A DNA stretch of 64,000 nt, from assembly GCA_965112155.1 (NCBI GenBank), contig OZ218098.1; one strand, given 5' to 3'. Positions 1-5,440 of this stretch are shown one piece after another; the first letter of the stretch is position 1; each line of letters opens with the position of its first letter. The notes beneath the pieces were generated by a model, which was given only the letters and a program-made list of their open reading frames with translations, was not told the DNA's origin and made no database searches. Made by a program: the position numbers and the translations under genes. The DNA comes from Podarcis liolepis (taxonomy: Eukaryota).

Positions 1-239
1 GTTGGGGGGCCCTCCAGCAGAACCCGCCTCTGCATGAGCGGTAAGAATTCCTTCCACAGCATCCCCCTTCTGGAGATCCAGGACACTTGCACGTGCTGAG
101 GAAAGCCGAGGCCAGCTCCCAAGTCAGATTGCCGCGCTCTGCAAGCAGCCCAGTGCACAATACTGTGCCCCACAATCCAGACCCGGATAGTGGGAAGACC
201 TAGGGTAAAACAACAGATGTGAGTACATGAAACCAGCAT
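1..239 (-). CDS. ORF4: SGNH/GDSL-family hydrolase (partial; continues past window start)
   Basis: Manual translation gives MLVSCTHICCFTLGLPTIRVWIVGHSIVHWAACRARQSDLGAGLGFPQHVQVSWISRRGMLWKEFLPLMQRRVLLEGPP... with no stop. VWIVGHS matches SGNH block I (G-D/H-S) and RRGM matches block II. The ATG at 239-237 overlaps the YR stop codon (TAATG). Confidence 0.85.
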   Translation of the reverse strand, partial: MLVSCTHICCFTLGLPTIRVWIVGHSIVHWAACRARQSDLGAGLGFPQHVQVSWISRRGMLWKEFLPLMQRRVLLEGPP

Positions 240-1212
240 TATTTCCGCACATAACCCCTGTATGCGCCCGACTTCCAACGACCCAGGTCTTTTATCCTTT
301 TAACCGACAAGCCCCAATGGGCAGCTGTCGTTGCTGCCCCAATCCTAAAGGAATGCGGAGCAAATTCAGAGGCGGCATGGCCACAGGCAGCCACGACCTT
401 GCGCAAGACCCCGGCAAACTGATGGCGCGCCAATGGCCGCCCATCCTCATGAATGAACAGTGGCCCATTTCCTGGAGGTCGTAAAGCCATATACCTCTGG
501 AGGTCCTTAACTGGGCAAGGGCCCCCCATCCCAGTTGCTGGGAGCCGAATAACTGCTCCCCTACCCAGTTGATCAGTTTTGGAACTCCTAACATGGACCT
601 GCAGTTCTGACTGAGACAGGCTCACGTCCTGTAGCAGCAAGCCTCTAGAACCACCATCCTGTTTAGGTTCAAACACCACTTCCCCAACTCTCAGGGCCCC
701 GAAAAAGGCTAGCGAATAGGCTGCGGAAAATAGCCGAGCCTCAAACTTAGACCAACAGATGCCCTTCAATTTACCTCGCATCTCGGTCAACAAGCCAAAC
801 GTTATAGGCCTCCTTGTAGCTGGTCTGGACGGGCAAAGACGCCCCCAACCCTCCAAAGCCTTGCGTACAACGAACTTCCCACAAGGATCAGTATTGAAAT
901 AAACCTTGCTAAAGAAGGAAATTGCGGCAGAATGCAACCTCAGAGTCCTGGCTGCCCGCCGCATCTGAAATAGATGCGCCAAATATTTGAGCACTTGTGC
1001 AGTAGAATGAGGTGTGTGCATTTTCCCTACCACTGACCGCCCTGTAAAATGCAAAAAATCGGTCCAAGCCTTCTTATAGGACCGCAATGTGGAGGGGGCA
1101 ACAGATGCAGCTACTCCCTGTAAAACTAAGTGCTGCCAAGGTTCCAGAGATGATCCGGGAAAAATTCCGGACGGTCTCGAGCCACTGGCGCCAGGGACCT
1201 GAACCGCTCCAT
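239..1212 (-). CDS. ORF3: tyrosine recombinase (YR)
   Basis: Catalytic motifs ALRVGE (R), SKTDQ (K), HSFRIGAA (HxxR), GRWKS (W) and AYRGY (Y). The frame stays open upstream of the track's TTG start (1087) through SVAPSTLRSY to a TGA near 1232. The start given here is the candidate splice acceptor. Confidence 0.93.
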
Positions 1213-3018
1213 CTGAAAACGGGACAGAGCATCAGCAATCTCGTTAGATACTCCAGGAACAAAACGAGCGGAAAATACAATATTAGAACGCAAGCAATGC
1301 AAAACAAAACCCCTCAACAGTGCTGATACCCTAGGTGAACGTGAAGACTGCTTAGCAAGCACGTTCACCACTGCCAGGTTATCTGTCCAAAAACATACAC
1401 GCCGGTCCCTGAATTGCTCGACCCACAAATGGACGGCCACTACAATGGGGAAAAACTCAAGAAAGGTTAAGTCCCGAGTTATGGCTTCCCCACGCCAAGC
1501 CAGAGGCCAGCGCTCAGCACACCACCTGCCATCCCAATACAAACCGAAGCCCAATGACCCTGCGGCATCAGAGTGCACCTGAAAATCATTACACAGGTTC
1601 AAGGTGTCCTGCCAAAGTGACACGCCATTGAATTCCTCCAGGAATTTCAACCAAATACGAAGATCAGCACGCACTTGGGCTGACAGGCGCACTCTATGCC
1701 TCGGGGACCTCAATCCAGACATAAGTCTGGCCAAACGGGAACAGAAAGGCCGCCCAGGAGCGATCACCCTGCACGCAAAATTCAGGTGGCCCAGCAACGA
1801 CTGCAGTTGTCGCAGAGTGACCTTTTTTAACGGGATGAGGTCAGAAATAACACCTCTCAGCGCAAGAATCTTATCCGCCGGCAAACTGGAAGTTTGCGCC
1901 ACCGTATCCAACAAAATACCCAGGTAAGTCAGCTGCGTAGAAGGACCTTCAGTCTTCTCTGCAGCTAACGGCACACCCAGTTCCTCAGTTAAGGCCGCGA
2001 AGGCCTGCAGCAATGCCACGCAGTCTCCCGTATCGCTAGCTGAGGCCAATAAATAATCATCAAGATAATGAGTGACCCCGCCCAGGCCGGTTCTTTTGCG
2101 CAGGGCCCAATCCAGGAAGGAACTAAAACACTCGAAGGCGGCACAGGCTACTGAGCAGCCCATGGGCATGGCCTTGTCAAAATAAAATTCCCCGTCAAAC
2201 TGAAAACCCAGCAGCCAGAAATCGTCTGGATGAATCGGAAGCAGCCGAAATGCAGACTCAATGTCGCATTTGGCCAGCAGGGCACCCTGCCCGAATTTCC
2301 TTATCATTTTGATCGCTTGATCAAGCGATGCATACTTCACAGAGCAAAGCTCCGGGGGAATAACATCATTTACTGATGTGCCCCTAGGGTGAGAAAGGTT
2401 GTGAATCAGGCGAAATTCCCCCGGAGCTTTTTTAGGAACTATACCTAAGGGCGAAATATGAAAGTTGGGAAATGGGGGCTCAGCAAAGGGGCCGGCCATA
2501 CGTCGTAAAGCCAGTTCTTTCCCAATTTTCCTACGCGCGACCTCCGGCATTTCCCTCACTGACTTCTGGTTTGAAGGGTTCCTAGCTACTGGAGTTGACG
2601 CCACTGGGATTCGAAAGCCCAGAGAAAATCCATCCCGCAAATAGGACGCTGCTTCCTGAAGAGGGTATAATTGTAACCACGACAACAACGGCTGCAACTT
2701 AACTGGGGTATAAGCTAAAGAGGAAAGAACACTATTTTCCTGCTCCAGAGACTGTAGCCTGGGGGGCGGCTTTTGGGGGCTGCTGAGAGCCCCCCCCTTT
2801 CCGAAAGGGCCGACGCACCCCCGCACAAGAAGATGCCGGGTGGTTCCCTGCACACTTCTCACAGCTGTGGGAAAATCTGCAGGACTGGCGCTGACAAGTA
2901 CCCCTATTAAAATCCCAACAAAAGTACTTGCGACCCACCTTAGCCGGCACAATCTTAGGCTTCTGCAGTTCAGGGACCTTATTATCGATGCGTGGAGCCA
3001 CATAAGTAGTCCAGACAT
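1126..3018 (-). CDS. ORF2: reverse transcriptase + RNase H (DIRS/Ngaro type)
   Basis: RT motifs SPLGIVPKK, FRLIHNLS, KCDIESAF, MPMGC, HYLDD and YLGI. RNase H motifs SDAAGSLGFG, LEFFP, TDNLAVV and NEIADALSR. Overlaps gag at its 5' end and the YR frame at its 3' end. Confidence 0.95.
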   Translation of the reverse strand: MSGLLMWLHASIIRSLNCRSLRLCRLRWVASTFVGILIGVLVSASPADFPTAVRSVQGTTRHLLVRGCVGPFGKGGALSSPQKPPPRLQSLEQENSVLSSLAYTPVKLQPLLSWLQLYPLQEAASYLRDGFSLGFRIPVASTPVARNPSNQKSVREMPEVARRKIGKELALRRMAGPFAEPPFPNFHISPLGIVPKKAPGEFRLIHNLSHPRGTSVNDVIPPELCSVKYASLDQAIKMIRKFGQGALLAKCDIESAFRLLPIHPDDFWLLGFQFDGEFYFDKAMPMGCSVACAAFECFSSFLDWALRKRTGLGGVTHYLDDYLLASASDTGDCVALLQAFAALTEELGVPLAAEKTEGPSTQLTYLGILLDTVAQTSSLPADKILALRGVISDLIPLKKVTLRQLQSLLGHLNFACRVIAPGRPFCSRLARLMSGLRSPRHRVRLSAQVRADLRIWLKFLEEFNGVSLWQDTLNLCNDFQVHSDAAGSLGFGLYWDGRWCAERWPLAWRGEAITRDLTFLEFFPIVVAVHLWVEQFRDRRVCFWTDNLAVVNVLAKQSSRSPRVSALLRGFVLHCLRSNIVFSARFVPGVSNEIADALSRFQMERFRSLAPVARDRPEFFPDHLWNLGST

Positions 3019-4363
3019 CTAAATCCTTACGATCCCAGCGGGCAGTAGGGATCTTGGCAGCCCTGCGCCTGAAATTCTCATCATAAGAGATTGCAGCAGA
3101 TGCTCCCGCCATCGTAAACGCTGAACGGACTATGGACAAATAAACCCATAGGTGCATGGATCTCCGTGGGTAAGCCGCTGCCACCACGCCAGCGAACACC
3201 TGGAAACTATCCAACCATCGTTCAAAGGTCCTTTCAGCCTTTGGCAAGACCACCCTCTTTTTCGTGGCTGCCACACCCTTAACCTGCGAGTCCTGGCACT
3301 CCTGGGGGGGTGCCAAACTAAATATGTCAATGTAACGACCGTCCAGAATCCTGGACCGCAGTTTTGTATGCAAGTGGGCACCGGGAATAATGTCCCTAGC
3401 CGAATTGGTAGAAACCTTCACGTCAGGCATGAGGACCCCATCCAGGCAGTCCTGCACCGCCCCATACCTAGCCCTGTGAGAGTTTGCCCTCCGCTCCCAA
3501 GCCCATTTAGGGAGTCCAGAGGTCTCCGCAAAGCCCCAGTATAGCTTAAGTGAGGCTTCCTCGTCGCTACTGGATGTTTGGGACGAAGTACCTGTGGAAG
3601 AAGACGAAGTGTCCCTCCGTCTTCTCTTGGCGCGCCTCCTGGACTTCTTTTTCCGGCGGCGGAGCCCACCCGAAGACGACTTTGGAGGTGGTGGAAGGCT
3701 GTCCTCCACAGAGGACTCGGATGCGTCACCCTGCATCGCGACACCTGAAACTGACTGAGGCAGAGGATGAAGTGTCCCTCCGACTCCGCTTGGCCCACCT
3801 CTTGATGCTCTACTTCTCTGCTGACCTGTACCAGGAAGAGACTGAAAAGACAGAATTTGTGAATGACCAGGAACCAAACGGACAGGCGCAGAAGGCGGGA
3901 CGCCTGGCGCCTGCACTGCTCTGATCCTAGCTGACGCCCTTCTATTAGCCGTACCCCTAGCACTCCCCCGACCCCTTCGAGCAGGCACCGGCACTGCTGG
4001 TAGGTCCGGGGCCTGGGCCAAGGCGCCAGGAGAGGAATCACCGGCTGCTACAATCCCTCCCTCGTCTTCACTAGAAGAGGACACAGAAGAGGCAATGCCA
4101 GCAGGAGGAGCCGGCCCTGCGGTAGAAGTTGATGGAGTAGAACAACGATGTAACAGGCCATCCATTTCAGCCTCCAATCGGGCCAGTGCAGGAGGGTCAC
4201 CAGCCAGACCAGTGACCATGGCCTGGATGCGGCTCATCGACTGGTCTGGCCGAGGTGACCGCAGAGCCTGGGACGGACCCTTTATAGGCCTTTTTGTTTT
4301 CATAGGCTGTTTTGTTGAGGGCTCCGGCCCAGGCCTCCTTGCCGCCCTCCTCTTTGGAGCCAT
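2732..4363 (-). CDS. ORF1: gag-like nucleic-acid-binding protein
   Basis: First ATG at 4363. Low-complexity N-terminus, a basic NLS-like run (RRRKKKSRRRAKRRRR), and C-terminal CWDFNRGTCQRQSCRFSHSCEKCAGNHPASSC (a CCCH finger followed by a CCHC knuckle). Confidence 0.88.
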   Translation of the reverse strand: MAPKRRAARRPGPEPSTKQPMKTKRPIKGPSQALRSPRPDQSMSRIQAMVTGLAGDPPALARLEAEMDGLLHRCSTPSTSTAGPAPPAGIASSVSSSSEDEGGIVAAGDSSPGALAQAPDLPAVPVPARRGRGSARGTANRRASARIRAVQAPGVPPSAPVRLVPGHSQILSFQSLPGTGQQRSRASRGGPSGVGGTLHPLPQSVSGVAMQGDASESSVEDSLPPPPKSSSGGLRRRKKKSRRRAKRRRRDTSSSSTGTSSQTSSSDEEASLKLYWGFAETSGLPKWAWERRANSHRARYGAVQDCLDGVLMPDVKVSTNSARDIIPGAHLHTKLRSRILDGRYIDIFSLAPPQECQDSQVKGVAATKKRVVLPKAERTFERWLDSFQVFAGVVAAAYPRRSMHLWVYLSIVRSAFTMAGASAAISYDENFRRRAAKIPTARWDRKDLDVWTTYVAPRIDNKVPELQKPKIVPAKVGRKYFCWDFNRGTCQRQSCRFSHSCEKCAGNHPASSCAGVRRPFRKGGGSQQPPKAAPQATVSGAGK

Positions 4364-4472
4364 ACCTGCTGCCAACGGGACACAAATTCACTGTAAATGC
4401 GAGTAATCTAGCAATTAAATCACTCAGACCCAAAAATTTAAACCGCAAAGTAACCAATTACTTCCAGGCAGG

Positions 4473-4620: not shown

Positions 4621-4789
4621 CCCTCCCCGCCCCCGGTCAATAGGCCACCTACAAAGGCCTAAATTAGGCCGATTGCGAGCCAAGAAGGCCGAAACCGGGC
4701 AGCGGCGCCCGCGCAGCCCCACCAGCACGAAGCGGCCCGGTAGGCGCGCGCCAACACCGCCACCCTCGTGAGCGTGGGGGGGGGGAACG

Positions 4790-5440
4790 CGGAGGCCCTT
4801 CTGTGGGCCGGGAGGCCGCTCCGCGGCCTGTCGCCGGCCCCCCTGCCACCCCGCAATAACCCGGGGGGGGGAACACCACCCGGCCTCTCGCAAGGCCTCA
4901 GGCACCTAAAGGCCTAGCGGGCCTAGCCCGAGAGCGCGAGGCGCGAATCGGCCGCTCCCGAGGCGCCCGCGCGGCGCCTCCACCTACTCGGCCCTGCTAG
5001 GCCGCACCAGAAGCGTCGGAGCGCGCGCTAAAGGAGGCCGGCTCCTCTGGGCCTAGCGGGCCCAGCCGCCGAGAGCGCGAGGCGCGAATCGGCCACTCGC
5101 CGATGCGCCCGCGCGGCGCCTCCGCCTGCTCGGCCCAACTAGGCCACGGCAGGGAAAAAACGTGGAGGCCCTTCTGAGGGCGGGGAGGCCGCTCCGCGGC
5201 CTGTCGCCGGCTACCCTGCCGCCCCACAATACCCAGTGGGGGGGGGAGGAGCACCAGCCGGCCTCTCGCAGGCCACGGGCGCCCAGAGGCCCGGCGGGCC
5301 CAGTCGCCGAGAGCGCGAGGCGCGAATCGGCCGCTCGCCGATGCGCCCGCGCGGCGCCTCTGCCCACTCGGACCGAGTAGGCCACAGCAGGCGCGTCGGA
5401 GCGCGCGAGAAAGGAGGCCGCCGCCGACCCGGTAAGTGCC
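4790..5440. repeat. GC/CpG-rich nested tandem repeats in the retrotransposon leader
   Basis: A GAGAGCGCGAGGCGCGAATCGGCC...GCGCCCGCGCGGCGCCTC unit occurs at ~4930, ~5070 and ~5310. A GGAGGCCCTTCTG...GGAGGCCGCTCCGCGGCCTGTCGCCGGC unit occurs at ~4791 and ~5164 (period ~373 bp). Confidence 0.85.

Follow-up and report, generated by a model that had tools for sequence, protein, structure and literature searches.

A 64,000-nucleotide stretch of contig OZ218098.1 of Podarcis liolepis (GenBank assembly GCA_965112155.1), referred to here as the window, carries a Ngaro-type tyrosine-recombinase (YR) retrotransposon on its minus strand, from position 1 to approximately 5900. The element was recognised from its open reading frames (ORFs) and from Pfam searches. 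Its coding regions follow the Ngaro order of gag, reverse transcriptase (RT)/RNase H and YR, as read from the ORFs, from the domains RVT_1, Phage_integrase and Phage_int_SAM_4, and from homologues. The RT ORF ends 33 residues past the motif ADALSR and Pfam shows no methyltransferase after RNase H, a lack that sets Ngaro apart from DIRS and PAT, and YR is followed by an extra ORF for an SGNH/GDSL hydrolase, the mark of the vertebrate subgroup. The window cuts the element off at position 1, before its 3' end. The repeats visible are those of its 5' leader alone, where G+C-rich tandem and dispersed direct repeats (units of 54-263 nt, 63-89% identical) occupy positions 4786-5425; self-comparison of the window found no second copy of the element. 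The analysis reported here concerns splice sites that may join the first part of gag to the YR and hydrolase frames of this element.

The nearest protein relatives of the element are found in lacertid lizards. The RT ORF matched Pfam RVT_1 (E 3.4e-14) and was 86% identical to protein P0122 and 81% identical to P0123/P0124, while the YR frame matched both Phage_integrase and Phage_int_SAM_4 slightly below the cut-off. On visual comparison, the window gag was approximately 80% similar to P0121, a gag protein from Podarcis lilfordi; Pfam gave no match for gag or for its leader part. The hydrolase is cut by the window edge, and its 79-residue fragment matched hydrolase ORFs in a full-library search. 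Its homologues P0032 and P0057 carry PF13472 as a precomputed assignment, and P0244 matched PF13472 below the cut-off.

A first-pass annotation of this DNA had placed a phase-1 splice acceptor before each of the four ORFs and had proposed that a single phase-1 donor could be joined alternatively to each of them. Reading the letters of the minus strand, we found all four AG dinucleotides at the positions it had given, each in phase 1 of its own frame (Table 1). The YR frame does open close to its acceptor, 19 nt before it, and the acceptor does fall within the codons for ADALSRFQ, making that stretch dual-coding. Splice-site weight matrices, rough enough to be fit for ranking alone, placed the hydrolase acceptor 8th, the RT acceptor 10th, the YR acceptor 11th and the gag site 28th among 366 AGs, a ranking that is suggestive and no more. 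Motifs resembling branch points were read by eye at -32 (CTAAC) and -19 (CTGAT) before 1212, and at approximately -23 (CTCAC) before 199. Together with the donor described below, the layout is that of GT-AG introns with compatible phases: CAG/GTACTT at 3592/3591, TTTTCAG before 1212 and CCCTAG before 199, all in phase 1.

Table 1. Coding frames and candidate splice sites of the Podarcis liolepis element, in window positions
Feature	Position	Strand	Remarks
Full gag ORF	2732..4363	minus	ATG 4363, stop TAG 2734-2732; CCHC-like knuckle near C-terminus
RT/RNase H ORF	1126..3018	minus	+1 relative to gag; open far upstream of gag stop; stop at 1126
YR frame	open 1231-239	minus	-1 relative to RT; no ATG ahead of conserved SVAPST
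SGNH-like hydrolase frame	239 to window edge	minus	ATG 239 overlaps YR stop (TAATG)
Candidate leader exon, coding part	3592..4363	minus	codons 1-257 from gag ATG 4363, then G (3592) as first base of codon 258
Putative 5' splice site CAG/GTACTT	3586..3594	minus	last exon base 3592, intron GT 3591-3590; phase 1 in gag; weak by consensus
RT AG	2716-2715, first exon base 2714	minus	reads into CT TAT ACC (A Y T P V)
YR AG	1214-1213, first exon base 1212	minus	reads into AT GGA GCG (D G A V Q)
Putative YR 3' splice site	1213..1232	minus	pyrimidine-rich tract plus CAG, gctctgtcccgttttcAG; inside RNase H codons A-L-S-R-F-Q
Candidate YR exon	239..1212	minus	AT completes junction codon (G+AT = Asp), then 323 codons, stop TAA 241-239
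Hydrolase AG	201-200, first exon base 199	minus	reads into GT CTT CCC (G L P T I R V W I V G H S)
Putative hydrolase 3' splice site	200..222	minus	ctcacatctgttgttttaccctAG
Candidate hydrolase exon	1..199	minus	GT completes junction codon (G+GT = Gly), then LPTIRVWIVGHS...; SGNH/GDSL-like, cut by window start
gag AG	4367-4366, first exon base 4365	minus	2 nt ahead of gag ATG 4363

Fusions of a gag leader to YR or to hydrolase are present among the NCBI gene models of Podarcis, Zootoca, Hemicordylus and Mixophyes. The window was compared with these models exon by exon using BLASTP; the evidence from the models is that of their protein sequences. In the leader+YR model P0022 of Podarcis muralis, the sequence runs ...KRSRHDTSSSST/DGVVQVPGSRGAATSEIFPRSSLEPWQQLVLQGV..., with the junction ...DTSSSST/DGVVQVPG..., and the same pattern was seen in P0004, P0007, P0014, P0019 and P0023. 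Further leader+YR models are P0026 (Podarcis) and P0114 (Mixophyes). The window leader (3593-4363) aligned to residues 1-222 of P0022, ending at ...DTSSSST, and the window YR exon (242-1210) aligned to the same protein from residue 224, leaving a single junction codon, Asp, between the two. Joining 3592 to 1212 gives (x)AT GGA GCG GTT CAG, or D G A V Q, and therefore reproduces the P0022 junction. A search restricted to residues 60-330 of P0022, for Logan or ENA ORFs across the junction, gave three hits, none of them informative. The YR models of other squamates and of amphibians also have long N-terminal extensions, which were not matched to gag.

The hydrolase gave a parallel result. The leader+hydrolase model P0243 (XP_077785642.1, Podarcis muralis) reads ...RRRRDTSSSSS/GRAAIRIWIVGHS, with the junction SSSSS/GRAAIRIW, and the junction predicted from the window is ...RRRRDTSSSST/G-LPTIRVWIVGHS. 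The window hydrolase exon was 83% identical to P0243 from residue 226, and the window leader was collinear with the leader of that model, with G as the junction codon. Leader+hydrolase fusions were also found in P0245 (P. lilfordi), P0250 and P0253 (Zootoca), P0260 (Podarcis), P0261 (Hemicordylus, isoforms X2, X5 and X6) and P0358 (the frog Mixophyes). At Zootoca LOC118082278, isoforms X1 (P0004) and X2 (P0253) share an identical leader of 207 residues, which is followed by DGPLPL... (YR) in the first and by EKLVNIWLFGHS... (hydrolase) in the second. In eight of the nine models read (P0022, P0243, P0250, P0253, P0260, P0358, P0114 and P0125), the codon at the junction specifies D, G or E and is thus GNN, as a G/GT donor in phase 1 would require. 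The ninth model, P0245, reads ...SSSSY/AGLAAIRIW, with an acceptor seemingly one codon further upstream.

The conservation of the acceptors was examined in 80 distant Ngaro-like loci (L001-L080) from metagenome contigs, in which YR is 26-44% identical to that of the window. Forty-eight of these loci had the RNase H tail motif and a long -1 ORF, and in 45 of them a Gln codon lay within nine codons of ...LSR. This codon, which corresponds to the YR acceptor, was CAG in 45 of 45 loci, against a frequency of 0.56 for CAG among the Gln codons elsewhere in the RT ORFs; in three loci where CAA was the first Gln, a CAG followed one or two codons further on. Ser in the motif was encoded by TCN in all 39 cases, and the median count of pyrimidines upstream of the acceptor was 13 of 18. 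Where the YR frame overlaps the invariant G, it variously encodes D, E, V, G or A, and coding for YR therefore does not account for the invariance. The YR frame itself was always -1, opened 7-70 nt ahead of the AG (in one locus it was open to the contig edge) and mostly had no ATG there.

Before the hydrolase, a phase-1 YAG with at least 11 pyrimidines among the 18 upstream nucleotides was found 5-40 nt ahead of the W-I/V-x-G-D/S/H-S block in 16 of 20 distant ORFs. The same test was positive in 1/20 and 0/20 ORFs in the other two phases, and in 14% of control codons (binomial 7e-11). Many of the distant hydrolase frames open approximately 10-45 nt upstream of the acceptor and have no ATG in that interval, and the distance to the YR stop can reach tens to hundreds of nucleotides. 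Across related elements, the YR and hydrolase acceptors are clearly non-random. Conservation of splice sites beyond the needs of coding applies to both acceptors at the DNA level, and to the donor only through the lacertid GGT ACN described below and the junctions of the models. The first-pass annotation had named conservation of the acceptors and of their phase in related elements among the checks on its proposal; this was borne out for YR and for hydrolase, and not for RT.

An alternative that dispenses with splicing is that recoding alone expresses the downstream ORFs, RT-RNase H-YR being made by a -1 frameshift in the overlap of approximately 100 nt and hydrolase by reinitiation at TAATG, with the AGs as by-products of the RNase H motif and the gene models as artefacts. 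The YR frame is indeed -1 relative to RT, with an overlap of this length at every locus, and a -1 ribosomal frameshift in the RT/YR overlap was proposed for YR expression in the review of Poulter and Butler (2015), in the form quoted in PMC13003380. A partially slip-like sequence, AAUUUUUC, lies within the window overlap, and Gnomon bridges the frames by ad hoc introns in P0010, P0013, P0128 and P0153. Programmed -1 frameshifting at overlaps of the gag-pol type thus has a likeness here in the overlap, but the window and 24 of 28 related overlaps lack the slippery heptamer, and the four overlaps that do contain a canonical X XXY YYZ are all copies of one family. Frameshifting also leaves unexplained the exclusive use of CAG in the face of a varied overlapping YR residue, and the occurrence of the same junctions in many independent models and species.

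The reinitiation half of this alternative has in its favour the TAATG at 241-237 of the window, where the YR stop overlaps an in-frame hydrolase ATG located 13 codons upstream of the acceptor. An adjacent or overlapping stop and start is, however, not kept in many of the relatives. Distant hydrolase frames, mostly without an ATG upstream of the acceptor and up to hundreds of nucleotides past the YR stop, keep the phase-1 YAG and its pyrimidine tract, a layout that, as judged from these loci, is hard to reconcile with reinitiation. Taken as the whole explanation, recoding seems to us improbable. The 13 codons from ATG 239 to the acceptor encode MLVSCTHICCFTL, which resembles a signal peptide; it is more likely a mere translation of the pyrimidine tract, the relatives having other residues rich in F/L/S/P/C at this place.

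The donor at 3592 was absent from the first-pass annotation, and was identified through the junctions of the homologous models P0022 and P0243. The window gag reads ...RRRRDTSSSST/G at this point, with the DNA TCC ACA G/GT ACT, and T/S-G-T-S-S (GGT ACN) is retained in the unspliced lacertid gags P0121, P0128, P0130 and P0138. Of the three donors suggested earlier, those at 3826 and 3799 were discarded, as the homologous leaders extend beyond both to ...DTSSSST, and the one at 4366 would remove the gag Met with which all of the models begin. The leader that precedes the new donor contains the basic clusters KRRAARRP, KTKRPIK and RRRKKKSRRRAKRRRR, followed by DTSSSST.

Several further features of gag were noted. 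The donor site (window 3570-3600, minus strand) is also the top-scoring acceptor-like sequence of the element, CGTCTTCTTCCACAG/GT, with a pyrimidine tract and CAG directly before the GT. A 50-nt direct repeat (3592-3641 and 3755-3804, 80% identical) duplicates the sequence directly upstream of the donor. With this repeat, the window gag has approximately 29 added residues (QRSRASRGG...SVSGVAM) that are not in P0243 or P0022; P0121 is the same, by eye. The added segment is flanked by CAG/GTCAGC (3826/3825) and TTTCAG (first exon base 3744), is 81 nt long and in frame, and could itself be a small intron.

The two remaining acceptors fared less well. The AG at 4366..4367, which had been put forward as a weaker acceptor for gag, lies upstream of the start codon, so that its phase is meaningless, and all fusion models begin at the gag Met (MAPK...). 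The letters at this site score better as a donor, CAG/GTATGG (donor rank 2, acceptor rank 28). For RT, a comparison of 22 matches to the TPV motif, the window included, showed no consistent phase-1 YAG with a pyrimidine tract before it. The RT models of Podarcis, Zootoca, Hemicordylus, Anolis, Eublepharis and Xenopus have in-frame ATG starts and no gag leader. Among the longer gag-RT models, entry into RT differs, being at EWLNRYPN in P0125, at GFEFGFRIP in P0153 and at SSPFVG in P0128; P0125 is the one of these that uses donor 3592, and enters RT approximately 11 codons downstream of 2714. A fourth place of entry (QEVLDLW) was found in P0170, in which the N-terminus is not gag-like. This variety looks like annotation bridging a frame change, and on these comparisons the RT acceptor at 2714 is unsupported as a conserved splice site.

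Protein conservation upstream of 2714 was considered as an argument and set aside as weak, since a pyrimidine tract also encodes residues rich in L/S/F/P. Another phase-1 AG lies near the RT start, at 2704-2703. Most of the 80 distant loci use CCA for Pro in the conserved (S/T)-P-(V/I) with which RT starts; where Val is next, this gives CAG/TT in phase 1, as at this second site in the window. The change of frame between gag and RT falls at window 2790-2810 (minus strand), where CCC TTT CGG (2809-2801) precedes AAA and eight consecutive Gs (2797-2790). Both frames read Pro-Phe here, and the RT frames of P0122, P0123 and P0127-P0129 retain 'PF.G', as do P0138 and P0162, in which gag-RT is a single ORF. 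RT is also +1 relative to gag in most of the distant loci. Gag-RT could be made by a +1 slip on UUU_C or by polymerase slippage in the G run, and an assembly error in this homopolymer is possible.

The idea of one phase-1 donor joined alternatively to each ORF is thus supported for YR and hydrolase, by the junctions of the models and the conservation of the acceptors, and is unsupported for RT and gag. We propose, with a probability of roughly 0.75 on this comparative evidence, that YR and hydrolase are made by splicing the gag leader of 257 codons onto two conserved acceptors. The minus-strand element would then follow a retrovirus-like splicing plan. Unspliced RNA would serve as the gag template, from which full-length gag would be translated, and, by one route or another, as the source of RT. 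A weak donor inside gag would keep most of the RNA unspliced. Use of the first acceptor, TTTTCAG in the RNase H tail codons ...SRFQ (1212), would give Gag(1-257)-Asp-YR, and the leader would provide the sole start codon of the YR frame. Use of the second, CCCTAG directly before the first catalytic SGNH block (199), would give Gag(1-257)-Gly-hydrolase.

The predicted junction 3592/1212 runs ...TTCTTCCACAG to ATGGAGCGGTT (...TCCACAG to ATGGAGCGG), and the predicted junction 3592/199 runs ...TTCTTCCACAG to GTCTTCCCACT (...TCCACAG to GTCTTCCCA). An intronless derivative would be expected to show in DNA as ...CCACAG directly followed by ATGGAGCGG or GTCTTCCC. Both junctions are, we infer, used in the RNA of Podarcis liolepis. 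The basic clusters of the leader resemble nuclear localization signals, and the leader may act as a module for nuclear import or tethering.

A number of points weigh against this proposal. The fusion proteins are Gnomon predictions, for which alternative isoforms require transcript evidence, and some of them could be continuous ORFs from spliced RNA that had been retrocopied, which would still imply splicing. The distant loci are non-independent samples, although many different families are included among them. The donor is weak, ranking 20th of 328 GTs by weight matrix, and in the distant gag ORFs the best donor was in phase 1 in 8 of 14, compared with approximately 40-50% in RT and YR ORFs, a difference that was not significant in this crude test. 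Finally, the hydrolase models P0244 and P0246 start, unspliced, at their own ATG, and the window copy likewise has an in-frame ATG, at 239.

The last of these points also favours a mixed scheme, in which leader fusions are made by splicing while some YR is made by a non-canonical frameshift and some hydrolase from its own ATG, so that the window copy may use either route. The RNase H tail is conserved as protein past FQ, and the unspliced reading is therefore also under selection. We nevertheless regard this scheme as doubtful: recoding signals were otherwise not found in the slippery-heptamer scan of the 28 overlaps, and the residues upstream of the hydrolase acceptor are unconserved and F/L/S/P/C-rich, like a translated pyrimidine tract. 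Least likely is that the acceptors mainly take host exons when the element is intronic, the gag donor being irrelevant. In P0249 (...SCS/GLAAVRIWIVGHS), P0251 and P0369, hydrolase is indeed preceded, from the same acceptor position, by a long and unrelated N-terminal part that probably stems from host exons, but most fusions have the element's own gag leader from its own Met. The hydrolase acceptor thus seems able to capture host transcripts, which we take for a secondary consequence of its strength.

Splicing of the gag leader onto YR and hydrolase would resemble retroviral subgenomic splicing in having one weak donor in or near gag and alternative downstream acceptors, in keeping unspliced RNA as genome and gag mRNA, and in letting downstream proteins borrow the gag start codon. 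In avian leukosis and sarcoma viruses, Env starts at the gag AUG, since the 5' splice site is located a few codons into gag. The leader here is much longer (approximately 257 codons, against approximately 6 in the avian viruses), it would be joined to a tyrosine recombinase and to a hydrolase in place of an envelope protein, and one acceptor sits among the codons for RNase H. Splicing is also known from long terminal repeat (LTR) retrotransposons, as in the copia gag mRNA, the gypsy env mRNA and the intron of plant Ogre elements. With these the present element would share the use of RNA splicing to regulate which ORFs are translated, but it belongs to the YR class and lacks a DDE integrase, and a single leader would be fused in frame to two enzymes.

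In its order of gag, RT/RNase H, YR and SGNH hydrolase, the window copy agrees with described Ngaro elements (Goodwin and Poulter 2004; DIRS-53_XT and DIRS-54_XT, PMC9210276), as it does in its overlapping frames, the lack of a methyltransferase domain and a YR frame that is -1 at the end of RT/RNase H. It is in the manner of YR expression that our reading departs from the literature, where, as far as PMC13003380 quotes Poulter and Butler (2015), frameshifting and not splicing was proposed. The description of the amphibian elements DIRS-53_XT and DIRS-54_XT states on this point only that all ORFs overlap (PMC9210276). Our literature search found no paper describing the splicing of Ngaro or DIRS RNA, and the Ngaro papers that it did find are silent on hydrolase expression. 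A splicing programme is thus probably new for YR retrotransposons.

The translation of overlapping ORFs without start codons has been a puzzle in YR retrotransposons, and the one proposal that we came across is the untested frameshift of Poulter and Butler (2015, as represented in PMC13003380). The splicing programme is a specific and testable alternative with exact junction sequences. If true, it explains why the RNase H tail retains ...SRFQ and, within it, an invariant CAG, and the active recombinase and hydrolase would be fusions to the Gag leader. We lean, if only slightly, towards a wider generalisation, that across animals Ngaro-type elements splice a Gag leader to YR (and to hydrolase where present) rather than frameshift, the leader supplying a start codon together with a nuclear-targeting or Gag-assembly module, so that the enzymes are delivered as Gag fusions. 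The spliced RNAs would retain both ends of the element and may thus give rise to derivative families without RT. Some of the 'XerD-like' and SGNH 'genes' of reptile and amphibian genomes may be products of such a programme, and the strong acceptors of these elements can also capture host transcripts, which is relevant to the annotation of these genomes.

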